From NCBI GenBank assembly GCA_907165135.1, contig OU015568.1, forward strand, positions 8,370,001-8,434,000: a DNA stretch of 64,000 bases, in the 5' to 3' direction. Position 1 is the stretch's first letter. Each line of letters begins with the position of its first letter. Position numbers and translations under genes: made by a program. Origin of the DNA: Oikopleura dioica (Eukaryota > Animalia > Chordata). Shown piece after piece: positions 37,171-57,136 of this stretch. Under the pieces are notes generated by a model. It worked only from the letters and a program-made list of their open reading frames with translations, was not told where the DNA came from and ran no database searches.

Positions 37171-40100
37171 TTATGGTCTCAAGTTGTCGTAGAGACTTTT
37201 GACATAGTTGAGGCTGCCCATTTTGGGAAGAGCCTCAATAGTTTCGGCGCAGGCGATCAAGTAGTTGATGTTGCTCGTGTCAACAGTCGCCACTGCATCT
37301 TCAATGTCCTTCGTGACACCGGCTTTGTACTGGTCGCTAAAATTAGGGTGAAAACACGTCGTTTATTATCGTCACTGGCTTACATGGGATCAACGACGCC
37401 GGCGAAGGAGAAGGCCAATGTTTCGAAGTCAAGTTTGAAACCGACGTGGAATTTGGTCATCTGAAGGGTTCTGACCATAAACACAACCCGGATGATCTGC
37501 GTTTCCGGATGATAGTAGATTCTGTTTCTCTTTGACTTTCTGAGAAAGGATTCGAACGAGTTATAAATAAATTTAACATGAAAAAATAGCGTTTATCAGA
37601 ACGCTATCGATAAAAAAAAATTTTGTATCTAAGAAAATATCAAATCCGTCCATAAAGTTCAGAATCTTGTCCAGCGCTTGCAGATAGATCTCGTTGTGGC
37701 TGTTTATGAAGGGATAGATTCGCGCTGTCATGCGCTCACCTTGTGCCCTCATCGAGTTTGCTACAAACAAAGGATTTACAACCCGAAAACACAAGAAAAA
37801 CTTACCCTTCTCCGCAAGAAATTCGATGAAGTGATCATCAAGTTTTCTGAAGTTCTTTCCAGGTTGCAGGCTTGGAGCGCGGAAGGAACGCAAAGCTGCA
37901 TGCTTGATGGAGATGTGATGGATGTCGTTGACTGGCCATCGCTCAAACTGCATCGTCTTGCCTCGGAAAACAAGGCGAGCATCGATGAAGAGATTCATCT
38001 CCCACGGCGCCGCGCAATATCGGAAGTTGTGTTTCTTCGCGACCGTCTCGCATCGCTCATCCCAGTTGATTCGTTTTACTTCTGGAATCGCGTCGATCTA
38101 CCAATAATTAGACAAATGAACATAATTTGCGACGAGTACCTTTGCCTGCTGCTCCTCTAACTGGCGCTCTAGCTCCTCAATCTCTTTCTGAAGTACATCA
38201 GTTTGAGATTGAGCTCTCTCTTGTGATCGTTTTTTGTTCGCAAGATCCTCTTCTTCACGAAGAAGTTTCTCGTGTTCGACCTCAAGATCGGCAAGAATCG
38301 GAGTAAGCTCTTCGTCTTTTTTGAAGACTTTTTCGGCCTCGGATTTGTAGAGCTTCACGTTGTCTATTTGAAGATTATAACGATATTGAAAAAGAGAAAT
38401 TGTTCTTACCGAGAAGAGGAAGATAATCGCCTTGGATTTTGATTATCGTTTCGTAAGCACTCTTCCTTGATTTCTCCTCCGCAGCAGCAATCACCTTCTC
38501 GAGATCGACTGGAAACTGGTCGAAATCCCGCGCGTAGTGGAATTTGACAGGCGCTGGCTTGCATTTTTTCATGTCTCGCAGGAACTTGTCGCAGAGATAT
38601 TTGTCCAGCTCCACCTTCGACTGGAGAAGAAGGTTGTCCATGATTCCAGGGTGAGGACGATCTGCCGGAAGTGGCTTCATGACGATCTCTGGGTGTGGCT
38701 TATCGAAGGCCGCTTTTATATCGCTAAAACGAGGGGTGAACAAGGGTCAGAAACAATGATTTCTTACGTGACGAATCGGTCGATTTCTTCACTTTGATCA
38801 GGTACATCTGGCAGTTCCGAAATCTCCCCGAAATTGCTCGTTGTCGCCATTGTGTTGTCACCAATCAAGCTGCGAGCGTTGATCTCAGCAGTTTTACTTT
38901 CCGCGAGCAGATCAATCTTCATCGTCATTTTCTGCATTTGCTCGGTCTTCTCATTCGATATCGCCTCCTTCGACTGGATCGCTTCAGTCGTGTCTGGAGT
39001 CACCAACGATTCTTCCATTTCGACATCGTTTGCCACAGTTGGTGAGTCCAAGTCGAGTTGTGGAATGCTTCCAAGGGAATCGCATGCCCCTAGTTCAGTC
39101 AAGTCAAGTCGCTTTGGAGCGACGGGGGTAAGCGATTCTAGCGCAGTTCTCTCAGAAACGTTGATGCTCAAATTAGTGGAAATCTGCTCCGTCACCGTCC
39201 GCTGAAACTTCTTCATCTGAGTATGTTTCGCCAATCCAAGGGAATCACGAGCGCGCATTAGGGCCTGTCGACCGCGAGAGCGACCGAAATCGGGAGTCGG
39301 AGGAGCGTAATCGTTGCCGTTGAGCAGGTCGATTTCTCGTGAAATCCCGTCGAAGTCGACAAGTGGCGATCTTATTTTCGGCGAGGGAATTTCAAACGGA
39401 GCCGCGGAGCTCATATTCGACGAGGCGATCTTTTTGACGTCTTCTGGAGTTCGAGGGTTGCTAAAGAAAGAAGTTTAAATATGGAAAATTTATCGGCAAC
39501 TTACTCAAGAATATTTTGAAGGCTTTTATTCGCCTTTGGAGTGATGACAACTGGCTTGGCAAGAGACTTTTCGAGGGCGAGAGATTTCTGCTCTTCTTCC
39601 TCCATTTGTGCCGCCTTCGCTTCCATTTGAGTAAACATCTCCGTTGATCCTTCCTCGTAATCGCCCATGGGACTGCCTGGACTGCCAATGACTGTCTGTT
39701 CCATAAAGACAGTCTTGTCAAAATTCTTTTGCTGGCCACCAAGATTGACCGTTTCATCCATCGCCATCGTCTTTTCCAGCGCGATCGTTCTATCAGCACA
39801 CATTGTCGGCTCTTCTGAATCATGGAAGAAGGCCATCGTCTTTTCCATTTTCTCAGTAGATTCTCCTTCCCCTTCATCATCTGCGCTCGAACCGGAACCA
39901 GGGCTGGAGCCACCTGTGGAGGCGAAAAGAGCAGCTAGGTTCGCCCTTAGAGCAGCCGCAGAGTCCACTTCTTTATCTGATTCTGATTGCTTCGTTGGCG
40001 TTGATGGAGATTCGGGACTGGAGGAGCTGGCGTAGCTGTCGATTTCGCGCTGGAAAATGCGCCGCTGGTGGACTTGTTGAAGAAGACTGGGGCGTTTCTT

Positions 40101-43100
40101 TTCTTGCGATCGGACAAGGGGATTTTCGGCGACGGAGAGAGTTGGAACGCTGGCGAGAGCGGGGTTTTCTCAGTTGGCGTTTTTGGGAGAAAATTTTGAG
40201 TCGCCTGACTGGTGACAGAAAGACGATTCTGGGTCAAGGAAAAGTCGTCTCCACCGCCCATCAGATCTGAAAATACCGATTATGATTCTTGAATTCAAAT
40301 AAATTGAAGCTTACCAAGTGTATTGTCCAGGACTTCCCTAGGCTTAGAACCAATTGGAGCAGTTGACATATTGAACATGGACGGAGATTCCTGGTCCATC
40401 GCTAGGATTCAAATCCGGAGAGGAAGGGCTGAGGTAAATTGCGTTGGTGTGTAGGTTTGAGAGAGGCGATTTTCTGGCAGTTCGATTTTCTGGCAGTTAG
40501 ACTTTCTGGCAAAGGCGATTTTCTGGCACTGCAAGAAAATCTAATATGCCAGAAAATCTAACTGCCAGAAAATCGCCTCTTTTGATTTTGAATAGATTCT
40601 GTAGATACAGTTAATGATCCTGGAAGGTAAAAAAACGGAGAGAAGAAAAGCTCGTAACTTATCTTCTGATTCTTCAGATAAAAAATCAGGCGCGCGTGAG
40701 CTCAAAAAAAACGAGGAGATTCTATATGAACAACTTTTGGAAGCATCCAAATCTTCGTTGAACAGCGGAATGAAAGGTCTTTCGAATATGATTGATTTTC
40801 ACACAAGACTCGCATCTTGAAACGGAAGTCAGGATCGTTGTTTTCAGAAAACAGAATCGTTTTCTTCGCTTTTTTGCTTTGAAAGCATATGATCTGGAAG
40901 CAATTTTGTCGAGGAAGGATGCATTGTTTTGAGTTTTGTTGAATCGTTACTCAGGCAGGGTTTTCGAAAGTACCACCAATGTTTTCTTACATGTTTTATG
41001 AAATTTCATTGACAAAGGCCACTTTTGACCCATTTATTCAACATTATTGGCTGAAGCAAACATAAATCAGCTTCTTCCGGGAATTTCTGTGTTAATCACC
41101 CGGTGTTATTTGCATCTGATTTGGAGTACTTGGTCACAGTAAGCAGCCACTGAGATAATGCCGCACGCTAATGCTTTTTGAAACTGAACTTGTTATAAAA
41201 CTATCCTGAAAATTCTTCCTCAGAAGTAGGTGGAATCGGTGTCATTTATAACATTTTTCTATCCGAATCTCTTCCTCATCCTCCATTTTCTCAAAAAAAT
41301 CAAAATCTAACTTTTCAGCTGCCTGTTAACCCGTTTGTCACTTCGAAAACAGCAAGAACGAACTGCGGATGCTGCCCTCATTCTATTTTTAGCGCAGAAA
41401 TCTCAATTCCAAGATGCGAGTCTTGTGTGAAAATCAGTCATATTTGAAAGACCTTTCCTTCCGCTGTTCAACGAAGATTTGGATGCTTCCAAAAGTTGTT
41501 GATATGAAATCTCCTCGTTTTTGAGCTCACGCGCGCCTGACTATTTCTCAGAAGATGAATTCCGAGCTTTTCTTCTCTGCGTTTTTTTATCTTCCAGGAT
41601 CATTAACTGTAGATTCAAAATCAAAAGAGGCGATTTTCTGGCAGTTAGATTTTCTGGCATATTAGATTTTCTGGCAGTGCCAGAAAATCGCCTTTGCCAG
41701 AAAATCTAACTGCCAGAAAATCGCCTCTCTCTGTAGGTTTGGCTCTCGCGCTTAGAGGTAAGCGAGGCTCTACCTCAAGATACCTCTGCGCTGGATGAAG
41801 TTTGACTCATAGGAAAATAAAGCAGTTTGTTGTTGGGCTCCCCTCACATTTTCCCTTTTCACCCCTTTGATGATTCATGAATCAGTTCATGGCAAAATGC
41901 AGCGCCCAAATGAGAGCGCTTATCGAAAATTCCTATCATCCGGCCCAAAAACGAATCATTCAAGGAGAATTTGCTGGTGCTTCATTTTCTCGTGCCGCGG
42001 CACCGTGCCGTGTCCAAACCTTTACTCCCTGAAAGGTTGTAGGTGGTCATGTGGGTACCAGTACCCACGTTCGATCTTATAAATGAATGTGGGTACCAGT
42101 ACCCTCGCTCGCTTTCTTTCTTGAACGTGGGTACCAGTACCCACGCTCGCTTTCTTCCTTGAACGTGGGTACCGGTACCCACACTCACTCTTGCTGATAA
42201 CCGTGGGTACCAAAAACCCCTGAAAGCCTGGAGACTTGAACGTGGGTATTTTCTCTAGAGCATTTTTGTTACTGTTATTTATTAATCAATTTGACTCTAC
42301 CACTTGCTAAGAGAATGAGTGATTTAAGCAAATTGTCTGTTGAAAAACTACAAAAATTAAAGGATGAAATTAACGGAATCTTAATGGTATTGATAATATT
42401 AATTTTTTCATGATTTAAATTTATAAAGGCCCCAGTTTCCAATGAACAAAATGGCTGCAAAGATGGAAATGGTCAACCCTCTGTTCTCCAAGCAAATGAT
42501 GACTCTTTATCCGATGATGAGCTGGATGCTATTCTCAATCAACGAAGTCCTTCTTACAATTTCATCCAGGATGAAATTGAATTTACTGAAGTTGATGAGA
42601 ATTTTCCCATGGCTTGTGGAGAGTCGAACCAATACGCTCAGGAGTCGAACGAATATGCTCAACAATCGAATCAGACGCCAACTTTGGAAGCTGTTGTGAC
42701 ATCAAGGATGAACAGAACACATTTGGTGATAGATGATGGTCGTCGATCTGAATATAAAAAATCATTTTCTACGAAGAAAAAATTTGTTTATCAATGCTGT
42801 AAGCTGTCTCCTGATGGCAAAGCTTGTCCGAAAAAATACGATGTCAGCATCGATCCTGCCCTGACATTTATGAATGTGAAGAAGAGAAAAAATGACAAAC
42901 AACAATCCTACTTGGACATCAATCCAAATGTCAATAAAAGCATTCTCTTCGACAAGGCCTTCTACAAGCTCGTTCCAAATCCAGCTCAAGAAAAAGTTCG
43001 TCATACCTGCGTTAGCAATGATGATGATCCCAATAATGAAAATATGGAGAAAGAAATTACTACGAAGATTAAAGCTTATCTTTACGATAACTTTCAAGCA

Positions 43101-46100
43101 CTCCGATTTTCAAGTCCTAACAGTATCAAGCGACAAATATTGGAGCTTCTTTCTCATGACTATACTTATGATGAGCTTGTTGCGAATTTCCCGAATCAAC
43201 AAAAATGGGAACAATTATATCGATATTATCGTGAAGCCAATTCCCCTGTGCGGGAAGCACTGGAGAGCATCGAAGATTTCGAATTCAACCCAGAGGATTT
43301 TTTGGTTAATTCAAGAACAATTATTCATAAAGAAGGGGCCGACTTATACTTCTACGATGAAGAAACAATTAAACAGTGCATTGATATTTCTGTAATTCAA
43401 GCAGGTGTGTGAAAATGAATCTCATTTACATCCTCATTTACTTTCATTTATCACTTACCTCACTCAGAAATCCGTATTGAAAATCGTTGTCAACTAGACA
43501 TCGACGTTGTTGGTCCAAGATTGTCAACTAGACATCGACATTGAAGGTCCAAGATTGTCCAATCTAAAAGATACTTTTATCAAACGGAACTGTTAATCAT
43601 TCAAAAAAAATTCAAACGGAACTGTTAATCATAATCAAATTAAGATGGAACTTCTTGGCGTGGATGGGGCAATCATTTTGATCAGCTGTGCAATTTTCTC
43701 TGTCGGATTAAAACAAAAGATGGTGACTACAAGTCAACCCTACTGTTCAGCTGTCTTCATCGTGGCCGATTTGAGGAAGATTATCGCCGAGTTTTTGGCC
43801 ATATGGCTTCAGTTTATAAAAAAATTGTAGGTAAGGATATAAGTTGTAATTTGCTGCTCACGGATTCAGAGTTAGGGCTTAGGAATAGTATTAGGGATAT
43901 AGTAGGACATAAGTTTTTAAAGAATTGTTTTTTTCATTTTAGTAAGAATCAGAAGGATAATTTTAGATTAGGAGGAGTAAGCGTAGAAAATCGTAGGTTA
44001 GGAGAGATTAGGGATATGTATAGTATTTGTAGGAACTTAGTTTATGTTAATGAGAATTTCGTTGTTGATTTCATAGGGTATTTGAGGGAATGGAATAAGA
44101 CTAGGGAATATTTTAGTGTCACTGAGGATAATTTAGTCATGATAGGTAAATTAGATGAGATTTTAAAGGGATTAGGGAAGAGGTTTTCGAGTCATAGGTC
44201 GGTTTTGTGTTGGGATGATGTTATTTTAGATTCTGATGTATATTTAGATAAGACTAGCAATGTAGTTGAGAGGTTTAATAGGAGAATTAAGGAAGCATTA
44301 GTTGAGAGTAGGCGAATTAGAACATTAGATAGAATTAGGGTTGTCGCTGAGGAGTTTAACATGATAAATTTTGATTTTAGGGTTAGTTTTAGGAGTAAGA
44401 GTAGGGCCCCAAATAAGAAATCCGTGAGAAGCCACGAGAGAGCGCGTGATTTGATTAAAATGTTAAAGCTTAGAAAAAATAAGGATGTTAATTTTGATAG
44501 GATTAGGGAACTTCTTGTAGATCTTTAGAGATAAGATTAGGGTTAGGATTAGGATAAGAGTTAGGGTTAGGATTATAAACTGAAACTATTTGTCAAAAAC
44601 GTGGTGATAATCTTCCATCAGGCAATTTTATTTGTTTATTTTCGATATTATTTTCTATTTCTAGTTTCTGTTTCTTTCTTGTTTTTTGATACTTCAGTTC
44701 ACTTTTTATGTTTATGTTTGTTCAAAGTACTGTTTGTTCGTTAAAATAAAAATACCTGATAAAATTTTGAGTTGATTTGATGTAGTCGTTGTTGTTGTAG
44801 CTTGATTTGATCCGGGATAGAATGGTTTTTCACTTGTCTTTGCGCGCTCAAAGCTTCCAACTCGTGGCTCATGCCGTGCGTTATGGCCAGATTGATCGCA
44901 GAAGTTAGGAGTGTGTCGACGATTCGCTCGATCGGTCTTTAAAGTACCCACGTTCAAAGTGCAGAGCGGGCGAGGGTACTTGGTACCCACGTTCAAAGAA
45001 GAAAGCCAACAGGGGTACTTGGTACCCACGCTCAAAATCTTAACCCAATGTGGGTACCAGTACCCACGTTCAGAAACTAAAGCCAATGAGGGTACTGGTA
45101 CCCACATTCATCATGTGGAGCGAGTGTGGGTAAAGTACCCACATGACCGCATACCACCCCCTGAAAGGAGCGGCACGGCACGGCACGTGCCGTGCCGTGT
45201 CCGTGCCGCGGTGCCGTGCCGTGCCGTTGACCTTTCCCCACCCTGCTCTAAGGGAAGTTTCAAAATTTTGTGACATGGCAAAAATTTTTTTGAATTTTCA
45301 AGTCGATCTTGTTAAGTGAGAAAAAAGAAGCATTTTGATATAGATTTCATGGAATTTGAGTCAGTATAATGGAAGTTATTGCTCATTTAGTGTCTAAAAA
45401 TAGCAAAACTTTGCGCGCAGTTTCTGACTCATCCGTGCATGGAATTTCAAATTTTTTCTGATAAATATATCACTCCAGGCCTGAACTTCATGTGTTTTTT
45501 TTTATTTGTGTTTTTGATTAGGGAATCGCCGGTAAAATGCATATTTATTTGATGGTGTTTGGTGATTAAAAATCGGCTGAAATTTGAGACGAAAACAGGA
45601 ACGCGCAGCGACAAAACGGCCTCGAAATCAGGCGCTGGAAATAAAGCTCATCCCATTTTCAAAATGAAAATTTCGGAAAGGAAAGGGCAGCGACTAAACG
45701 GGGTCGAAATACGGCACCACAAAATAAGTTTGGCCCATTTTCATCATGAAAATGATCTTGAGTCATTTCATCCATGTCTCCCCAATTTCGCCTTTTCCAA
45801 CAAATAAAAAATCGGTCAATCCTTGGAGTTATCAAGTGTTAGACCCACCATTCGACTCGTCTCAACGAGCTGAACAAAACTGCGCTATCAGTTTTTCAAC
45901 CTCTTCTTTACAAATATAGAATCAGACCTTCCACGTCGACGAAAATCTCCATCAAGTTCTTGCCATCTGCCGAGCTCTGATCTCGCCCGATGAAAACTTT
46001 TGATAAAATAATGAAAACCAAAAATGGTTCGGCGCTACAATAGAGGATGCACCATATATGGTGTTCTTGGCGGGTACCTTAGAAAATCCACTTTTGGCTG

Positions 46101-49100
46101 TCTTTTCGACGTCTTTATTCATCCTCTTTTTCTTCCGATGTCAGTCGAGGTCACGTGGCCCCAAATGACCTCAATAAAAGCGAGATGAAAAAATTATATC
46201 TTTTCAAATGAACAAATTTTTCATATTTAAAATGAAAACCATAATAAAGTATAAAACAAGAATATTTTAAATTTTTATATCAATGGGTGTGGGTGGGGTT
46301 GGGGACGTAACTAGTATTGATAAACTCAGAGTTCCAGGCCTCTGTCAAGCCCCTTAAAATTAAAAGTCAAGGAACGGGGCTGAAACGGCCCGAAGGGCCG
46401 TCAAGCCCTTAAAATTAAAAGTCAAGGAACGGGGCTGAAACGGCCCGAAGGGCCGTCAAGCCCTTAAAATTAAAAGTCAAGGAACGGGGCTGAAACGGCC
46501 CGAAGGGCCGTCAAGCCCCTTAAAATTAAAAGTCAAGGAACGGGGCTGAAACGGCCCGAAGGGCCGTCAAGCCCTTAAAATTAAAAGTCAAGGAACGGGG
46601 CTGAAACGGCCCGAAGGGCCGTCAAGCCCCTTAAAATTAAAAGTCAAGGAACGGGGCTGAAACGGCCCGAAGGGCCGTCAAGCCCTTAAAATTAAAGTCA
46701 AGGAACGGGGCTGAAACGGCCCGAAGGGCCGTCAAGCCCCTTAAAATTAAAAGTCAAGGAACGGGGCTGAAACGGCCCGAAGGGCCGTCAAGCCCTTAAA
46801 ATTAAAAGTCAAGGAACGGGGCTGAAACGGCCCGAAGGGCCGTCAAGCCCCTTAAAATTAAAAGTCAAGGAACGGGGCTGAAACGGCCCGAAGGGCCGTC
46901 AAGCCCTTAAAATTAAAGTCAAGGAACGGGGCTGAAACGGCCCGAAGGGCCGTCAAGCCCTTAAAATTAAAAGTCAAGGAACGGGGCTGAAACGGCCCGT
47001 AGGGCCGTCAAGCCCCTTAAAATTAAAAGTCAAGGAACGGGGCTGAAACGGCCCGAAGGGCCGTCAAGCCCCTTAAAATTAAAAGTCAAGGAACGGGGCT
47101 GAAACGGCCCGAAGGGCCGTCAAGCCCCTTAAAATTAAAAGTCAAGGAACGGGGCTGAAACGGCCCGAAGGGCCGTCAAGCCCCTTAAAATTAAAAGTCA
47201 AGGAACGGGGCTGAAACGGCCCGAAGGGCCGTCAAGCCCTTAAAATTAAAAGTCAAGGAACGGGGCTGAAACGGCCCGAAGGGCCGTCAAGCCCCTTAAA
47301 ATTAAAAGTCAAGGAACGGGGCTGAAACGGCCCGAAGGGCCGTCAAGCCCCTTAAAATTAAAAGTCAAGGAACGGGGCTGAAACGGCCCGAAGGGCCGTC
47401 AAGCCCTTAAAATTAAAAGTCAAGGAACGGGGCTGAAACGGCCCGAAGGGCCGTCAAGCCCCTTAAAATTAAAGTCAAGGAACGGGGCTGAAACGGCCCG
47501 AAGGGCCGTCAAGCCCCTTAAAATTAAAAGTCAAGGAACGGGGCTGAAACGGCCCGAAGGGCCGTCAAGCCCCTTAAAATTAAAAGTCAAGGAACGGGGC
47601 TGAAACGGCCCGAAGGGCCGTCAAGCCCCTTAAAATTAAAGTCAAGGAACGGGGCTGAAACGGCCCGAAGGGCCGTCAAGCCCTTAAAATTAAAAGTCAA
47701 GGAACGGGGCTGAAACGGCCCGAAGGGCCGTCAAGCCCCTTAAAATTAAAAGTCAAGGAACGGGGCTGAAACGGCCCGAAGGGCCGTCAAGCCCTTAAAA
47801 TTAAAAGTCAAGGAACGGGGCTGAAACGGCCCGAAGGGCCGTCAAGCCCCTTAAAATTAAAAGTCAAGGAACGGGGCTGAAACGGCCCGAAGGGCCGTCA
47901 AGCCCTTAAAATTAAAAGTCAAGGAACGGGGCTGAAACGGCCCGAAGGGCCGTCAAGCCCTTAAAATTAAAAGTCAAGGAACGGGGCTGAAACGGCCCGA
48001 AGGGCCGTCAAGCCCCTTAAAATTAAAAGTCAAGGAACGGGGCTGAAACGGCCCGAAGGGCCGTCAAGCCCCTTAAAATTAAAAGTCAAGGAACGGGGCT
48101 GAAACGGCCCGAAGGGCCGTCAAGCCCCTTAAAATTAAAGTCAAGGAACGGGGCTGAAACGGCCCGAAGGGCCGTCAAGCCCTTAAAATTAAAAGTCAAG
48201 GAACGGGGCTGAAACGGCCCGAAGGGCCGTCAAGCCCTTAAAATTAAAAGTCAAGGAACGGGGCTGAAACGGCCCGAAGGGCCGTCAAGCCCCTTAAAAT
48301 TAAAAGTCAAGGAACGGGGCTGAAACGGCCCGAAGGGCCGTCAAGCCCCTTAAAATTAAAAGTCAAGGAACGGGGCTGAAACGGCCCGAAGGGCCGTCAA
48401 GCCCTTAAAATTAAAAGTCAAGGAACGGGGCTGAAACGGCCCGAAGGGCCGTCAAGCCCTTAAAATTAAAAGTCAAGGAACGGGGCTGAAACGGCCCGAA
48501 GGGCCGTCAAGCCCCTTAAAATTAAAAGTCAAGGAACGGGGCTGAAACGGCCCGAAGGGCCGTCAAGCCCCTTAAAATTAAAAGTCAAGGAACGGGGCTG
48601 AAACGGCCCGAAGGGCCGTCAAGCCCTTAAAATTAAAAGTCAAGGAACGGGGCTGAAACGGCCCGAAGGGCCGTCAAGCCCTTAAAATTAAAAGTCAAGG
48701 AACGGGGCTGAAACGGCCCGAAGGGCCGTCAAGCCCTTAAAATTAAAAGTCAAGGAACGGGGCTGAAACGGCCCGAAGGGCCGTCAAGCCCCTTAAAATT
48801 AAAGTCAAGGAACGGGGCTGAAACGGCCCGAAGGGCCGTCAAGCCCCTTAAAATTAAAAGTCAAGGAACGGGGCTGAAACGGCCCGAAGGGCCGTCAAGC
48901 CCTTAAAATTAAAAGTCAAGGAACGGGGCTGAAACGGCCCGAAGGGCCGTCAAGCCCTTAAAATTAAAAGTCAAGGAACGGGGCTGAAACGGCCCGAAGG
49001 GCCGTCAAGCCCCTTAAAATTAAAAGTCAAGGAACGGGGCTGAAACGGCCCGAAGGGCCGTCAAGCCCCTTAAAATTAAAAGTCAAGGAACGGGGCTGAA

Positions 49101-51528
49101 ACGGCCCGAAGGGCCGTCAAGCCCTTAAAATTAAAAGTCAAGGAACGGGGCTGAAACGGCCCGAAGGGCCGTCAAGCCCTTAAAATTAAAAGTCAAGGAA
49201 CGGGGCTGAAACGGCCCGAAGGGCCGTCAAGCCTCTTAAAATTAAAAGTCAAGGAACGGGGCTGAAACGGCCCGAAGGGCCGTCAAGCCCTTAAAATTAA
49301 AAGTCAAGGAACGGGGCTGAAACGGCCCGAAGGGCCGTCAAGCCCCTTAAAATTAAAAGTCAAGGAACGGGGCTGAAACGGCCCGAAGGGCCGTCAAGCC
49401 CCTTAAAATTAAAAGTCAAGGAACGGGGCTGAAACGGCCCGAAGGGCCGTCAAGCCCCTTAAAATTAAAAGTCAAGGAACGGGGCTGAAACGGCCCGAAG
49501 GGCCGTCAAGCCCCTTAAAATTAAAAGTCAAGGAACGGGGCTGAAACGGCCCGAAGGGCCGTCAAGCCCTTAAAATTAAAAGTCAAGGAACGGGGCTAAA
49601 ACGGCCCGAAGGGCCGTCAAGCCCCTTAAAATTAAAAGTCAAGGAACGGGGCTGAAACGGCCCGAAGGGCCGTCAAGCCCCTTAAAATTAAAAGTCAAGG
49701 AACGGGGCTGAAACGGCCCGAAGGGCCGTCAAGCCCTTAAAATTAAAAGTCAAGGAACGGGGCTGAAACGGCCCGAAGGGCCGTCAAGCCCCTTAAAATT
49801 AAAAGTCAAGGAACGGGGCTGAAACGGCCCAAAGGGCCGTCAAGCCCCTTAAAATTAAAAGTCAAGGAACGGGGCTGAAACGGCCCGAAGGGCCGTCAAG
49901 CCCTTAAAATTAAAAGTCAAGGAACGGGGCTGAAACGGCCCGAAGGGCCGTCAAGCCCCTTAAAATTAAAAGTCAAGGAACGGGGCTGAAACGGCCCGAA
50001 GGGCCGTCAAGCCCTTAAAATTAAAAGTCAAGGAACGGGGCTGAAACGGCCCGAAGGGCCGTCAAGCCCTTAAAATTAAAAGTCAAGGAACGGGGCTGAA
50101 ACGGCCCGAAGGGCCGTCAAGCCCTTAAAATTAAAAGTCAAGGAACGGGGCTGAAACGGCCCGAAGGGCCGTCAAGCCCCTTAAAATTAAAAGTCAAGGA
50201 ACGGGGCTGAAACGGCCCGAAGGGCCGTCAAGCCCCTTAAAATTAAAAGTCAAGGAACGGGGCTGAAACGGCCCGAAGAACACCATATATGGTGCATCCT
50301 CTATTGTAGCGCCGAACCATTTTTGGTTTTCATTATTTTATCAAAAGTTTTCATCGGGCGAGATCAGAGCTCGGCAGATGGCAAGAACTTGATGGAGATT
50401 TTCGTCGACGTGGAAGGTCTGATTCTATATTTGTAAAAGAAGAGGTTGAAAAACTGATAGCGCAGTTTTGTTCAGCTCGTTGAGACGAGTCGAATGGTGG
50501 GTCTAACACTTGATAACTCCAAGGATTGACCGATTTTTTATTTGTTGGAAAAGGCGAAATTGGGGAGACATGGATGAAATGACTCAAGATCATTTTCATG
50601 ATGAAAATGGGCCAAACTTATTTTGTGGTGCCGTATTTCGACCCCGTTTAGTCGCTGCCCTTTCCTTTCCGAAATTTTCATTTTGAAAATGGGATGAGCT
50701 TTATTTCCAGCGCCTGATTTCGAGGCCGTTTTGTCGCTGCGCGTTCCTGTTTTCGTCTCAAATTTCAGCCGATTTTTAATCACCAAACACCATCAAATAA
50801 ATATGCATTTTACCGGCGATTCCCTAATCAAAAACACAAATAAAAACACATGAAGTTCAGGCCTGGAGTGATATATTTATCAGAAAAATTTGAAATTCCA
50901 TGCACGGATGAGTCAGAAACTGCGCGCAAAGTTTTGCTATTTTTAGACACTAAATGAGCAATAACTTCCATTATACTGACTCAAATTCCATGAAATCTAT
51001 ATCAAAATGCTTCTTTTTCTCACTTAACAAGATCGACTTGAAAATTCAAAAAATTTTTTGCCATGTCACAAAATTTTGAAACTTCCCTAAGCGAGAGAGC
51101 CCAACCTACTCGCCCACGCAATTTACCTCAGCCCTTCCTCTCCCGATTTGAATCCTAGGTCCATCGTGTTTTCTTTGTCCACGGAAATATCTTTTGCAGC
51201 AGAGTTATTGGCGGACGAGTTAGAGGTGTAATCATCGAATTCTAGCGCAATCAGTGATTAGTAAAAATCAACTCAAGTCAATCAAGCATTTTATGGATGA
51301 TCGAAAAATGATTGTTTCTCAAAATAGTTCAATTTTGTTTGAATATATTTTGAAATCAAAACCCAAAAAAGACTCACCTTTGACCTCATTTTTCGGCGCG
51401 AAAGAAACTCGTGACTTTCTTCTCTCGGATCGCCGGACAGGTCCGTTTACTTCCGACTTGAGAACGCTTTTTCGCGGCTTTTTCCTCTGACCTGTCCGGG
51501 GACTGCTGGCAGCTCTCTTCTCCGACAT
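37171..51528 (-). CDS. KNL1: Kinetochore scaffold KNL1/Spc105; exon 2 interrupted by a 10.76 kb composite transposon
   Basis: N-terminal RKSVLKS and RRKSRVSFAPKNEVKEF (SILK/RVSF motifs); disordered region with M[DE]xT-like repeats; coiled coil (38098-38358); C-terminal domain consistent with RWD. The frame is continuous across the empty site (KENTMD-QESPSMF). Confidence 0.8.
40459..41731. mobile_element. MULE-type MITE (1273 bp) inserted in the left TIR of the outer element
   Basis: Termini GAGAGAGGCGATTTTCTGGCAG, inverted arms ~330-360 bp; 9-bp TSD TGTAGGTTT at 40450-40458 and 41732-41740. Confidence 0.92.
42035..45158 (+). mobile_element. Putatively autonomous Mutator-like (MULE) transposon, 3124 bp
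   Basis: Imperfect TIRs GGT.GTA.G.GGTCATGTGGGTAC with arrays of the palindrome GTGGGTACnnGTACCCAC; TSD CCCTGAAA at 42027-42034 and 45159-45166 (extendable to 9-10 bp); encodes a transposase. Confidence 0.88.
42315..44528 (+). CDS. MULE DDE transposase with FLYWCH-like Zn finger; exons 42315-42386, 42429-43404, 43645-44528 (643 aa)
   Basis: GT-AG introns join one stop-free frame of 1932 nt; motifs QADGT...FDQL, TDSE...CFFH, TSNVVERFN; LVIDDG...YQC...C...HTC. Confidence 0.85.
45252..51087. mobile_element. PIF/Harbinger-type foldback element (5836 bp) inserted in the right TIR of the outer element
   Basis: GGG...CCC termini, TAA TSD (45249-45251, 51088-51090); near-identical ~815 bp inverted arms 45252-46068 and 50276-51087; no transposase. 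Confidence 0.88.
46344..50278. repeat. Minisatellite 2, ~70 copies of a 55-56 bp unit with the same hairpin core as minisatellite 1
   Basis: Unit GAAACGGCCCGAAGGGCCGTCAAGCCC(C)TTAAAATTAAAAGTCAAGGAACGGGGCT. Confidence 0.97.
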
Positions 51529-51975
51529 ATCCGCTTCACTCTGCAAATTTGCCTCAATTTTCTGAAAATAAAAATCTCAAGTCTGGTGCCAAGGCGGAGC
51601 GAAAAAGCAGAATTCAAACGACTCTCTTAAAATGGCGCGCGCTGATTGGCTGCGACGCTGAACTTGGCGCACACTTTGCGATTTCTCTTGTTCTCGCGAT
51701 ATTATCTAAAAAGCAGGAAAACGGTTTGAACCTGAAGATTGTCTGGCCGTTTATCGATACATCAAATTTCCAGAATATTCTAGAAAATGCTTCTTTGAAA
51801 AAATCATTGAACATTCTCTTTTATGGCCGAAAACTCAACTTTCAGACACAAACCGAAATTAAAACTCATCATTATTTCACTAAACATCTTTTCTCAATTC
51901 TTTCCACTTCTCTCTACCCTGATTGGCCGGCTTCATCATCTCTAAATTTTCCTAATTTTCAGAAATCGTCGAAAA

Positions 51976-54632
51976 ATGGCGAGTAAAAGAGCATTCCTTC
52001 AAGAAAACCTGGAAGAGGAGCAAGAAGAATCATCTCAAAAACGACTCTTTGAAGAACCGACCCCAGAAATTCAAACCTCAAAAAAGGGTGGAAAAGAAAA
52101 TGAAAAAGATAGATTTGGACCGACTCCGGTTCCGAGTGGAAAAGAATTTCTCAGAGACGAAAATAAGGTTCAAATGAGAACTGCTCATATAAGGTACCTT
52201 TGTCCTTTCGTTTTTCGCTTCATCCTTTTTTTCTTCAGGCTACAGAAAGACTTGAAAACGATCAACAAACGGGCGAAAAATGCGTCGCAAAAGGCCGAAA
52301 TGCTGAAAATTCTTGAGCCGACAGAACATGGAGCGATGAAGAAAACGGGCAAAATCTATTCTCAGAAAGATATTCTAAAAGTGGCGGATGTCCAGACGAT
52401 GCAGAAGAAGTTCTCGCTCGATTTGGACATGGGCCCGTATATTGCTCGATACGACGCTAGGTAAACCTTGAAAAAGGCTCTTCCCACCCTTATTATCTCT
52501 ATTCTAGCGGAAGACATCTTCTCCTGGCTGGAGAGCTTGGTCACGTGGCCATGATCGATCATTACACAAAAATGCCAAAATGCGAGTTTTCCGTAAAAGA
52601 AAAGATTTCGGTCGGCTCATTTTTTGCCTTCTTTTTCTGAATTCAAATTTCTAGGACGCGATTTTCCTCCAAAATGAAAAGCTAATGGCCGTAGCGCAGA
52701 AAAAGTGGACTTATGTTTACGATAATCAGGGGACAGAAATTCACTGTTTGAAGAAAACGGATAGAGTGAACAAGATGAATTACTTGCCCTATCATTTTCT
52801 ACTCGCTTCAATTAACAGACTAAGTTAGAAAATGCCAAGAAGATCACCTTTATTCATAATTTGCTTTAGATTATCTCTCCTACATCGACATATCAATCGG
52901 AAAAGAAATCTACTGCAAGCGAGTGAGCGAAGAAGGAAGTCTAAATGTCATTTGCAACAATCGAACGAACGGGATCATCCATCTTGGCCACACGACGGGA
53001 ACTGTCACTCTTTGGTCGCCAAATAGCGAGAAATTCGTTGCAAAGATGTTGTGCCACAAAGTAAGCTTTTCCTTTTTTTCTGATCATCAGCTTCGAATTT
53101 TAGAGTAATGTTATTTCCACGGCTGTTTCAAGCGACGGAAAATATATGGCGACTTCAAGTCAAGACGCGTCGCTGAAAATTTGGGATTTGCGAACTTGGA
53201 AGTGTTTGAGCACGAAAAGATTGCCTCGAGGAGCGCATCAGCTACAGTACTCGCAGAGAGGATTGCTGGCGGCTTCGTTTGCCAATGTTGTGGAATTGTG
53301 GAAACGTAAGTTACTAAGAGAGAAAAGTGTGGTTGATCTAGGCTGGTTCGATCTTGTATCAGATTTTGCGCCCCGCTGAGGGAGGTCAAGTGTAGCGCCC
53401 TCTTTTGGCCATAGTTGTTCATTAAACATAGGTTTCTATGCTTTTACAAACAAAGATATGAAAATTTTTGAAATGCATCACGAGCATGTGGGGTGTCGTC
53501 ATCGTCAGTAACGACTGTTACTTGTATGAAAAAATAAATAAAATCTTGATCAATATTTCTGACTTATTTGATTTTGCAGATCCTTGGGAAGAAGAATGCA
53601 CACAGCCAATAATGCAGTACAAAACGGCTCTCACTCCAACCACCCTTGATTTCTGTCCGTACGAAGACGTGCTCGGAATCGGCTCCAAAAAGGGCTTCGA
53701 AAGCATCCTCGCTCCTGGAGCGGGAGAACCAAATCCAGACAGCTGGCAGTACAACCCCTTCCAGACTAAAAAGCAGCGGGCGGAGACGGAAGTTAGAATG
53801 TTACTGGAAAAGGCGCCGGCGGATACGATTTGTTTGGATCCGAACTTGCTGGCGAAATTGGACGAAAGCGCTGCTCAGGGTGGCTATTTTGGATTTGGGG
53901 GTTAGTTGGAATTGGATTGGATCCAATCCAATAAGGTTTGGATGGAATTTGGATGGCCAGGGTACCGGATTTTGTTGGGAAAAATTGGGCAATTGGGGGA
54001 AATTGGGGAATTGGATCCAATAAAAAATATATCGCTAAACTATGCAAAGAAGGGTCATTTTCATGATTAAAATGAACAATTTCGGATAAAAAATCATTGT
54101 TTTGACTCTGTTGATCCTCCTTTCGGATAAAAACTAACTGTTTCGCTTCTTTTCAAAGTACTAAAAGCCTTGGAAAAATTGGAAATCCAATTGGATCTAA
54201 TTGGAATTGGGGATTTTTGGGGAATTGGGTAATAATTGGATTGGGTTGGATTTTGGATGGATAGCTTGGAGTCAAAATTTATTGGATGGAAATTGGATGG
54301 CCAGACCCCAAAATTTTGTCCAAAATAGCCACCCTGGCGCTGCTCAAGGTAGTTTCTCAATGATTCTCGGAGTTTCTGACTTTTGAATTTCAGAATTCGA
54401 CGAAGAACAATTGAAACGAGTTGGATTCAAGCGGGATAGAAAGTTCGAACCTCGAGTACGAAAGCGAGGAAAAGGCAAAACCGGAGCGAAGGAAGCAAGA
54501 AAGTCGAAAATGCGAGAAGCTGCGTTCAAGAAGCATTTGCTGGCAAAGAGGGAAAAAGAAAGCAAACAGACGATCGTCAAAAAGGAGCAGGCGAAGAATG
54601 TTCTGGCCAGATTCATGAAGAAAGACAACTGA
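51976..54632 (+). CDS. WDR46: WD-repeat protein WDR46/Utp7 (SSU processome)
   Basis: KAEMLKILEPTE; KKFSLDLDMGPY; IIHLGHTTGTVTLWSPN; FCPYEDVLGIG...PGAGEPNPD...NPFQTKKQRAETEVRMLLEK (BING4CT-like). Confidence 0.93.
53876..54336. mobile_element. hAT MITE (461 bp) inserted 4 nt before the end of a WDR46 coding exon
   Basis: Perfect TIR CAGGGTGGCTATTTTGGA / TCCAAAATAGCCACCCTG; 8-bp TSD GCGCTGCT at 53868-53875 and 54337-54344; internal TTGGA repeats. Confidence 0.95.
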
Positions 54633-54764
54633 AAGAAATGACTGTTTTTCTGTTCTGTTCTTTTGAATTAATTCAATAAATTGAATGCAGAAAAGAATGA
54701 AAAAGAAAACTTCATATGATTTTATCACTCAAACTTTTTTTAAAGATCTTGATTGGGTCCAAAA

Positions 54765-55121
54765 ATGCTCGAAAAGTACGAAAAAGCGTGGAATTTCGGC
54801 GTTCAAAAGCGGAAAAAGCCCGAGACTCCCGAAAACTCAGACTCCGAAACCTCCGAAAATGAGAATGATTTGCCTGAGAAGCCCGAAAAAGCGCCAAAAG
54901 AAAAAGTATCGATGGCTGCTCACATGACTAGGCCGCTTGAAAGTCAAGAGTTGTTGCTGCTCTTGTGTTTGATTCTTCTGATAGCTATTTTTCTGTTTGT
55001 ATTTTTTAACCCCGATTTGATGGAAAATCCGCTCAAAGAGGATCGTCAGAAATCTCAATTACCGACCCTTCCGGAATCCGAACCTGACTCGCTCTATGAA
55101 AACTTGCAACAGAACTTGTAG
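54765..55121 (+). CDS. Small single-TM protein of unknown function (118 aa)
   Basis: ATG-initiated ORF with an acidic N-terminal half and the hydrophobic stretch LLLLLCLILLIAIFLFVFF, between WDR46 and TSSC4. Confidence 0.5.
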   Translation: MLEKYEKAWNFGVQKRKKPETPENSDSETSENENDLPEKPEKAPKEKVSMAAHMTRPLESQELLLLLCLILLIAIFLFVFFNPDLMENPLKEDRQKSQLPTLPESEPDSLYENLQQNL

Positions 55122-55170
55122 AATAGAAATAATGCTGGTGACGATTTTCAACCTTTTTTCTTTTCAGAAT

Positions 55171-55949
55171 ATGGCCGACACAGAGACAAAATCATCAGAA
55201 TACAATTCTAAGAAATCTGCACTAGAATCCGCTTTCGACGCAGCAATCTCATCTGGTTCAAAGACCAGACTGGGCGTCAGAGAAGCCCCGTCCTTGGAAG
55301 GTCAGTGAAAGGTCAAAAGTACAGCGAATGTGAATTTCTGACTAGAACTGGACAGATTTTCAAAGAAAGAGTGCCGCTCAATCAAGGAGCACCAGTTCGA
55401 GAGGCCGAATTCGAGACCTTGCAGAAAGCGCCGCGCTCCGCGAATTCCATCTCACATCAAAAATCCCGAAAAATTCAAAAAGGTACTTTTTTCCGTCGCC
55501 GTTGTATTCACATGCTTTTAGTATGACTTGAGCGATGTATCTTTGAGCTCATCACAAGATAATAAAAAAGCAGCTTTATCTTTTCTCGCTGAAATGCGCG
55601 ATAGAAAGGAGCCGAAGGAAGATCCCTACGACGAAGAACGCGATGGAAAGCTCGTTTTCAAGAAACCCACACTTTCTTCAAAGAACAAATCAAAATCAAC
55701 CTCAAAGTCAAAGACATCCAAGACTTCAGGTAAATTAGTGTTTAGCAAACTTATGCCTATTTTTCAGATCGACAAGGTGCAGAAATCACGCATTTTGAAC
55801 ACGACTGGCGAGAAGAACTGGAGGCGAAAGCTGCCTCAAGTCTCGTCGAAAAATCAATCGAAAGCAATGAAACTCCCGAGAAAACGACTTTTGCCAAGAA
55901 AACTCGACGGAAAAACATTCGAAAACGGACTGAATCTGACGATGAATAG
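55171..55949 (+). CDS. TSSC4: TSSC4 (U5 snRNP chaperone)
   Basis: Spliced PSHIKNPEKFKK-YDLSDV...DNKKAALSFL matches the TSSC4 signature. Confidence 0.8.
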
Positions 55950-56010
55950 TTTAATAAATAATGACGATATTTTTTGAAATATTTTTATTCGAAAATGATT
56001 GAGAAACTTT

Positions 56011-57136
56011 CTACACTTTTGTTTTCTTTCGCAGTGTTCTCGGATAAAAGTAATTTCCTTTTCCAGTGACAACGTCAAATTTCATTTCTTCTTCGTTAGC
56101 TTCAATCAGCTTAAATTATTGGTTACTGATTGTTTCGACAAAATAATTACCAAAATAGCAAGTCGTTCACCCTTCAGAACTGAGAAGTAATCGAAGTCAG
56201 CTTGAGGATTCAGTTCGTGGTTCATATTTTTCAGGGAAATGTTGATTGCCTTGCCCATCCCAGTGACGAAGTAATGGATCCTTTTGCCCAGGAAGTGTTG
56301 CATATTGTGGTCGTGTCCGCAGATGTAAGCATCAGCATGATGTTTTTCCAGTAGAGGCTTAAAACTTTGTAATCATAAGCCATTAAACGAAGGCTACCTG
56401 TAAATATCGAATGATCTTTTCGGTTGGCCCGTGATTTCCGACGCTGTAGATTGGATGGTGACCGCCGACGATGCAGTAATCAGCGTAGCAGTTTTCAAGC
56501 TCTTTGTCGATCCACTGATTCTGTTCTTCTTGATAGTCTCGATCTGGGTATTCAGGAAGTTTCTTCACGTTTCCCATCATGATTTCCGTGTCAATCATCA
56601 TGATTTTGACGCTGAACTTTGGCTTCTCAATCTAAAACCCGTTTTCAGAACCCAGAAGTATTGTTGAGTCATACCGTGAAGGAGTACCATAAATCCGGAA
56701 ACTTGAAATTTGTCTCTCTTTGATGTGAATAAATAACCTGAAAACTGCGTTTTGGGCAGTTGGGTTACCGTCTGACCTGCGCTGTAGCATTTCGCCTGTG
56801 ATCATGATTCCCAAGACATTGGTAAAAGTCTAGATTTTTGATGTTTTCTCTTTCGGACGCGAACCCGTAGATATTCTCATAAGTTCCATTGAATCTGATA
56901 TCATCGATGTTGTAAACTCCATCCCAATAAAAATTGTCTCCGAGGGAAAGCATGAAGTCACAATCTCTCTCGCCGCAGAGTTTATCCATGCTTGCTGCTC
57001 CCCATTCTTGGGAATAACGGTTTCCTCCTGGATAAATGACTGGGATAGGATCGGCTCCGCCCCAATCGCCTATTGCCGGAAAGCGGACGTAATCGTCTGA
57101 TGCAAAAACAAGTGATAAGAGAGAGAAAGCTCTCAT
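56011..57136 (-). CDS. ACP5: Tartrate-resistant (purple) acid phosphatase
   Basis: GDWG, LGDNFY, LGNHDH, GHHP and CGHDH metal-ligand motifs; signal peptide. Confidence 0.93.

Follow-up and report, generated by a model that had tools for sequence, protein, structure and literature searches.

In a 64,000-nucleotide stretch of the Oikopleura dioica genome (contig OU015568.1, forward-strand positions 8,370,001–8,434,000; called the window below, and the source of all coordinates), a transposon of 10,757 bp interrupts coding exon 2 of a minus-strand gene that we call KNL1-like on account of its motif architecture. The interruption is a cut-and-paste transposon within a coding exon. It is bounded by matched inverted ends and a perfect target-site duplication; three wild same-lineage haplotypes lack it, as does a sister-lineage contig. 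On the compared sequences, we lean, without great assurance, toward a recent composite and probably hAT-like insertion, which would have left an allele disrupted, or leaky at most, beside an intact one in the reference animal(s).

Ends and target site of the insertion

The features around the two ends are given in the order in which the gene is read (a slash in a motif marks a splice site or the element boundary; TIR, terminal inverted repeat; TSD, target-site duplication).

51378–51528, minus strand: exon 1 of the KNL1-like gene, starting at 51528 (MSEKRAASS..RKSVLK..RKSRVSFAPKNEVK, ..NEVK); conserved in the sister-lineage contig L003
51242–51377, minus strand: intron 1 (GT-AG), between exon 1 and exon 2a
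51159–51241, minus strand: exon 2a (EFDDYTSNSSANNSAAKDISVDKENTMD), ending ...VDKENTMD
51159–51166, minus strand: TSD copy 1, CGATGGAC, the last 8 nt of exon 2a; a perfect direct 8-bp repeat
40402–51158: composite non-autonomous TIR element of 10,757 bp, defined by its TIR pair and TSD; absent from contigs L003–L006
51087–51158: right TIR of some 72 nt; its gene-strand sequence starts CTAG/GATTC and contains GAG/GAAGGG (donor 51137) and GAG/GTAAAT (donor 51126)
40402–40458: left TIR, resuming at 41741–41755 past a nested foldback element; its gene-strand end reads TTTAC..CCCTTCCTCTCC..GAATCCTAG/
40394–40401, minus strand: TSD copy 2, CGATGGAC, with an ATG in frame with exon 2b
40315–40393, minus strand: exon 2b (QESPSMFNMSTAPIGSKPREVLDNTL), QESPSMF..., followed by a GT-AG intron

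The original prediction had described a 10.76-kb TIR element with an 8-bp TSD that splits coding exon 2 on the minus strand, and its coordinates and arithmetic were all correct. The inverted ends (CTAGGATTCAAATC...) align between 40402–40457 and 51103–51158 over 56 nt with 93% identity, and over about 72 nt once the nested foldback is taken out. On the gene strand, the left TIR closes with TTTAC, a 12-nt pyrimidine run and CCTAG/, the terminal AG lying at 40402. Translation past exon 2a (KENTMD) continues into the element as LGFKSGEEGLR and then meets a stop, which agrees with the predicted halt of read-through 11 codons into the TIR. Nine AATAAA signals lie within the element on the gene strand.

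The length of the duplication is that of hAT transposons: the window has two copies of CGATGGAC, and L003–L006 have one each. The TIRs of hAT elements are short, about 10–25 bp, and begin with YARNG. The TIR found here is 56 to about 72 nt long and begins with CTAGG; a register shifted to start at TAGGA was rejected, since it breaks the TSD. Because the long TIR starts with CTAGG and not with the CAGGG usual for the hAT type, the superfamily is uncertain, and we describe the element as probably hAT-like.

The DNA contig sets of the organism had shares of 0.41–0.81, and RNA runs were chosen by species label alone. Runs X1, X2 and X5 (DNA) and X19 (RNA) were aligned to 50700–56299, and the best-supported rows of the resulting tables are considered here. 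The window holds one copy of the element. Contig depth over the TIR was about 3–6x single copy, and the contigs of X5 included backbone copies that lack the nested long-arm element and have a loose end at 51087. Pattern scans of JGI metagenomes for the TIR and for the end of exon 2a gave no match.

Empty alleles in wild and sister-lineage haplotypes

A homology search with the open reading frame (ORF) of exon 1 returned one protein and led to L003, a 1.9-kb Logan contig of a sister lineage. The search with the exon 3 ORF led to P0005 (98% identical) and, through it, to L004–L006, which are ENA marine metagenome contigs. L003 is collinear with the window on both flanks, with 90.5% and 85.3% identity. 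Its two alignments abut at the insertion point, and it carries a single target copy (CGATGGAG) in an uninterrupted exon 2. L004–L006 share 97.4% DNA identity with the window and are mutually different, representing three haplotypes of the window's own lineage. All three are collinear on both sides of the site, empty, and furnished with a single target copy. At this point L006 matches the predicted empty site exactly, ACACGATGGACCAGGAATC, and a transcript of the empty allele would have the junction ...ACGATGGACCAGG. A continuous frame at the empty site, predicted from the window as ...KENTMD-QESPSMF..., is shown by the wild contigs L004–L006 as well as by L003.

As judged from these alignments, the insertion is derived, polymorphic and young, because the three wild same-lineage haplotypes and the sister lineage are empty. 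By the same observation, the element is not established across individuals, as an introner would be.

From 51160 to 51410, a region that takes in intron 1, exon 2a and the last part of exon 1, the window differs from L004–L006 at 16 of 250 aligned bases (6.4%), and there may be two deep haplotype classes at the 5' end of the host gene. When X1, X2 and X5 were compared with the window, no difference fell between 51046 and 51568 among the differences listed.

Nested anatomy of the element

The element consists of a backbone miniature inverted-repeat transposable element (MITE) of about 0.5 kb and three nested transposons, each with its own TSD. The nested features are as follows.

40459–41731: nested foldback MITE; arms 94–98% alike, 16–17-nt subrepeats, 9–10-bp TSD TGTAGGTTT(G)
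42037–45158, plus strand: nested Mutator-like element (MULE); 10-bp TSD CCCTGAAAGG, 38-nt subterminal repeat arrays
45253–51086: nested element with long inverted repeats; its arms, each about 835 nt, are 96–100% alike; TSD CTAAG or TAA
46344–50278: 56-nt satellite, about 71 copies with 98% matches, enclosed by the long arms

The only transposase-like ORFs within the element are those of the nested MULE, at 42609–43412 (267 aa) and 43803–44528 (241 aa), both antisense to the host gene. The second of them had protein atlas feature matches to PF10551 MULE clusters (score 0.94), and a Pfam search of the MULE ORFs gave no match. The nested MULE is possibly autonomous.

Nesting was considered as a sign of long tolerated residence as an intron, and this was ruled out by the wild haplotypes. 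Since these are empty, the nesting is no evidence of a long stay in the KNL1-like gene, and we infer that the composite probably moved as one unit together with its three nested transposons.

The sequence of the long arm was present in X1 and X2 at about two-fold single-copy depth, in a version 4–5% divergent from that of the window. X1, which is apparently homozygous here, and X2 contained none of the window's own letters in the long arm. In the RNA run X19, 39 read pairs matched just the 34-nt long-arm piece at 50710–50743 and carried unlike sequence on both sides. A repeat related to the long arm is transcribed in the lineage of X19. The enclosed satellite (46344–50278) is very homogeneous, with a GC content of about 0.5 and a strong AT skew.

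A frameshift in exon 3 as assembled

The assembled allele differs from the wild contigs at a further site, about 290 nt downstream of the insertion.

40099–40102, minus strand: A run one A short, a -1 frameshift; AAGAAAAGAAA in the window against AAGAAAAAGAAA in L004–L006, and A5 in L003
39947–39949, minus strand: premature stop of the shifted frame, from the translation of the assembled allele

The conserved frame reads ...SPSPKIPLSDRKK ahead of the A run and proceeds after it, in the +1 frame, as KKRPSLLQQVHQRRIFQREID.... The same continuous reading across the run was found in P0006 and in the translation of L002, both from more distant lineages. P0005 lacks the frameshift too, and P0007–P0011, judged by their search matches, agree: they match the query in this frame over 85–99% of its length. 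All other indels between the window and the wild contigs are multiples of three or intronic. At the one-base differences, the window was the shorter sequence in three cases out of three. This homopolymer bias was rejected as proof of an assembly error: at 51267 (T5) nothing appears among the listed indels, and X1, X2 and X5 may share the T5.

On the compared sequences, the A-run deletion may be genuine, which would make it a second lesion, or it may be a homopolymer error of the long reads. A genuine deletion would leave the allele beyond rescue by any splicing of the element.

Splice sites at the element ends

In the original prediction, the two ends formed a frame-preserving design. Splicing from a GA donor at 51154 to the terminal AG at 40402 would leave the 8-nt duplication plus CTAG, and this 8+4=12 nt would keep the reading frame. 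The arithmetic is correct: TAG/GATTCA (51154) joined to CCTAG/ (40402) adds 12 nt and gives MDLAMDQ in frame. It was likewise correct that neither TIR acceptor is in frame with the canonical donor at 51126, whose in-frame partner is the exonic CCTAG/G at 40338. To place these pairs in context, GT, GC, GA or GG donors lying no more than about 130 nt from the upstream end were combined with any AG near the downstream end. Among 658 such pairs, 38 were in frame and stop-free; with so many solutions available, one in-frame pair is expected by chance.

The individual sites differed in quality. By far the best donor is GAG/GTAAAT (51126), 28 nt inside the element. Its use with the TIR acceptors would leave 32+8=40 nt or 32+27+8=67 nt, always a frameshift, and its only in-frame partner is the exonic site at 40338 (-24 nt). 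A combination of the +40-nt splice with the -1 deletion of exon 3 was ruled out as a means of restoring the frame, because the shifted frame meets a TAA within exon 2b. Splicing from GAG/GAAGGG (51137) to CCAG/ (40391) would add 18 nt in frame, and 51137 is a better GA candidate than 51154. The donor AG/GATTCA at 51154 has 0 matches at positions +3 to +6, so that its agreement with the consensus is limited to AG/G. In published GA donors of Oikopleura, the GA is preceded by a conserved AG and followed by a conserved A (PMC7072748). The AG/GA sites cited from elsewhere in the window, 20618 (plus strand) and 1879 (minus strand), do exist; both read AG/GAAA and, at the level of sequence, fit this published pattern.

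RNA pairing of the two TIRs was also calculated. Over about 57 bp from CUAG, the dimer reached -109 kcal/mol, compared with about -34 kcal/mol for the ends folded apart. Such a duplex would join the exons closely, yet it would bury both proposed splice sites.

These results give no support to a frame-preserving design. In-frame pairs are numerous, the GA donor is weak, the strongest donor shifts the frame, and the three wild haplotypes are empty. The exon 3 frameshift of the assembled allele, which lies beyond repair by splicing of the element, adds to this. Judging by these sites, we hold it improbable that the 12-nt in-frame product would be the main transcript. Similarly doubtful is the reading of the symmetric ends, CTAG/GATTC ... 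GAATCCTAG/, as a putative built-in GA-AG intron that, whichever way the element lies, leaves an in-frame scar of 12 nt. If it were true, essential genes would tolerate this TIR family, and perhaps many of the exonic insertions of this genome, as soon as a copy inserted, and the birth of an intron would have been caught in a chordate.

Competing explanations and the fate of the allele

The strongest competitor is broader than that one product. Any in-frame site pair might allow a permissive larvacean spliceosome to remove the element, which would then be a newborn intron in a working KNL1, with the exon 3 frameshift as an assembly error. In Oikopleura dioica, GA-AG introns occur often and have RNA support (PMC7072748), and the related Fritillaria borealis has documented introns of transposon origin (PMC11282704). 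The TIR offers donor-like sites and a pyrimidine tract with AG in both orientations, and its pairing over about 57 bp would bring the exons together. Set against this are the poor donor at 51154, which fits the consensus at AG/G alone, the stronger GT donor that competes 28 nt downstream of it, and the burial of both proposed sites in the TIR duplex. The putative intron would also measure 10.7 kb, as opposed to about 40 to 140 nt for the other introns of the gene, and three wild haplotypes lack it. On this balance, we consider a newborn intron unlikely, while giving it clearly more weight than its specific 12-nt form.

Another possibility is that transcription from the left end of the element would allow a start at the ATG of CGATGGAC in the second TSD copy (40399–40397), which is in frame with exon 2b (MDQESPSMF...). 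The predicted product would lack the first 77 residues and, with them, the SVLK/RVSF phosphatase-docking motifs; it would be cut short even so if the exon 3 frameshift is real. We therefore regard a truncated protein as very unlikely. Least credible of all is a long-read misjoin that placed the element in the exon; the assembly may carry homopolymer errors, but the 8-bp duplication is perfect, lies beside matched TIRs and repeats a target of which four independent empty contigs have one copy each, which is the signature of transposition and not of a misjoin.

Several points weigh against the disrupted allele that we favor. The TIR end, with its good pyrimidine tract and terminal AG, makes a fair acceptor, and the rate of GA-AG splicing in Oikopleura is high (PMC7072748). 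The frameshift in exon 3 may be a long-read homopolymer error, and two independent lesions on one recessive lethal allele are improbable on population-genetic grounds.

For the favored reading of a recent, damaging insertion, the following course is proposed. The starting point would be a MITE, some 0.5 kb long and making 8-bp TSDs, which gained the foldback MITE, the Mutator-like element and the long-inverted-repeat satellite carrier. The whole composite would then have transposed recently, in one piece, into coding exon 2 of the KNL1-like gene, which is single-copy. It would be present on the assembled haplotype as a polymorphic and probably rare allele. Its transcripts would most likely yield no full-length protein, by one of three routes: they could read into the element and stop after 11 codons, end at one of the nine sense-strand AATAAA signals, or be spliced from the GAG/GTAAAT donor to a TIR acceptor with a resulting frameshift. 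We infer that the sequenced animal was heterozygous; a carrier would survive on an intact second allele like the wild ones.

Identity of the host gene

The original prediction named the gene KNL1. The name draws on its motifs: an N-terminal pair of protein phosphatase 1 (PP1) docking motifs, a MEKT/MDET/MEQT repeat region, and a putative C-terminal coiled coil. The docking pair in exon 1 is of the SILK and RVSF type (SVLK...RVSF; ...RKSVLKSEVNGPVRRSERRKSRVSFAPKNE) and is conserved in L003. The candidate MELT-type repeats MEKTMAFF, EKTMAMDETV and DKTVFMEQTV are kept across lineages, and a coiled-coil-like exon lies C-terminally at 38098–38358. The other introns in view measure about 40 to 140 nt.

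Profile, structure and atlas evidence did not add to this. Pfam searches of all large exons and of the relatives' proteins gave no match, including none to MELT. A single-sequence AlphaFold2 model of 37576–38097, tested for an RWD region, had a pLDDT of 33 and was unusable, and the atlas returned nothing toward a C-terminal coiled coil with RWD domains. The match of the repeat region to a KNL1/MELT cluster in the protein atlas was weak, with a score of only 0.52. Exact-protein look-ups of the three window ORFs beside the junctions gave no match, and searching for homologs of the initial portion of exon 3 gave none either. Database searches with the host-gene ORFs found no transcript-derived protein. 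The assignment to KNL1 is based on motif architecture, and we accordingly use the name KNL1-like.

The host gene also carries a 6-nt in-frame indel polymorphism at 39670, where the window encodes PMGDY and the wild contigs PMAMGDY.

RNA reads and a neighboring insertion

The RNA run X19 belongs to another lineage. Of its 57 aligned reads, none was at least 99% alike, and nearly all ran into unlike sequence.

A second transposon lies 2.7 kb away, at the exon/intron border of the neighboring gene. This hAT MITE (53869–54339; TIR CAGGGTGGCTATTTTGG, TSD GCGCTGCT) is missing from the X1 and X2 contigs, which have an exact joint sharing 8 nt, and it is a segregating insertion. Its absence from both contig sets with an exact 8-bp joint indicates that young segregating insertions are common here.

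Relation to known systems and significance

In the maize Ds/dSpm and C. elegans Tc1 alleles, insertions in exons are partly spliced out, and cDNA showed the junctions. The present insertion resembles them as a cut-and-paste element in a coding exon whose termini carry cryptic donor and acceptor sites. It differs in being composite and 10.7 kb long and in having a best donor that shifts the frame, and it is known here from DNA.

The hAT-type MITEs of this genome provide a closer comparison. Like the copy at 53869–54339 (TSD GCGCTGCT, TIR CAGGGTGGC...), the element has an 8-bp TSD, is non-autonomous and segregates as presence or absence. In contrast to that copy, which starts with CAGGG, it has a long TIR (about 57–72 nt) that starts with CTAGG.

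The introners of Micromonas and Aureococcus (Huff 2016) and the MITE-derived non-canonical introns of Fritillaria borealis (Henriet 2019) are reviewed in PMC11282704. As in these systems, a TIR/TSD element lies in coding sequence, and the splice signals would come from the element ends. Another likeness is the larvacean host, in which GA-AG introns are common and the U2 spliceosome is permissive. Introners are short, multi-copy, spliced in many genes and largely fixed, whereas the present copy is very large, is missing from the three wild haplotypes, is out of frame with canonical sites, and is known from DNA.

Users of the reference genome should note that 10.76 kb of foreign sequence breaks up the KNL1 model, which is frameshifted as well in the assembly; the wild alleles are intact. 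As the evidence stands, the case adds to the young exonic insertions that segregate in this reference, which derives from very few haplotypes. Should carriers remove the element by in-frame splicing, it would offer a direct view of the passage from transposon to intron, within an essential gene of a relative of the chordates and in a lineage already known for permissive splicing.

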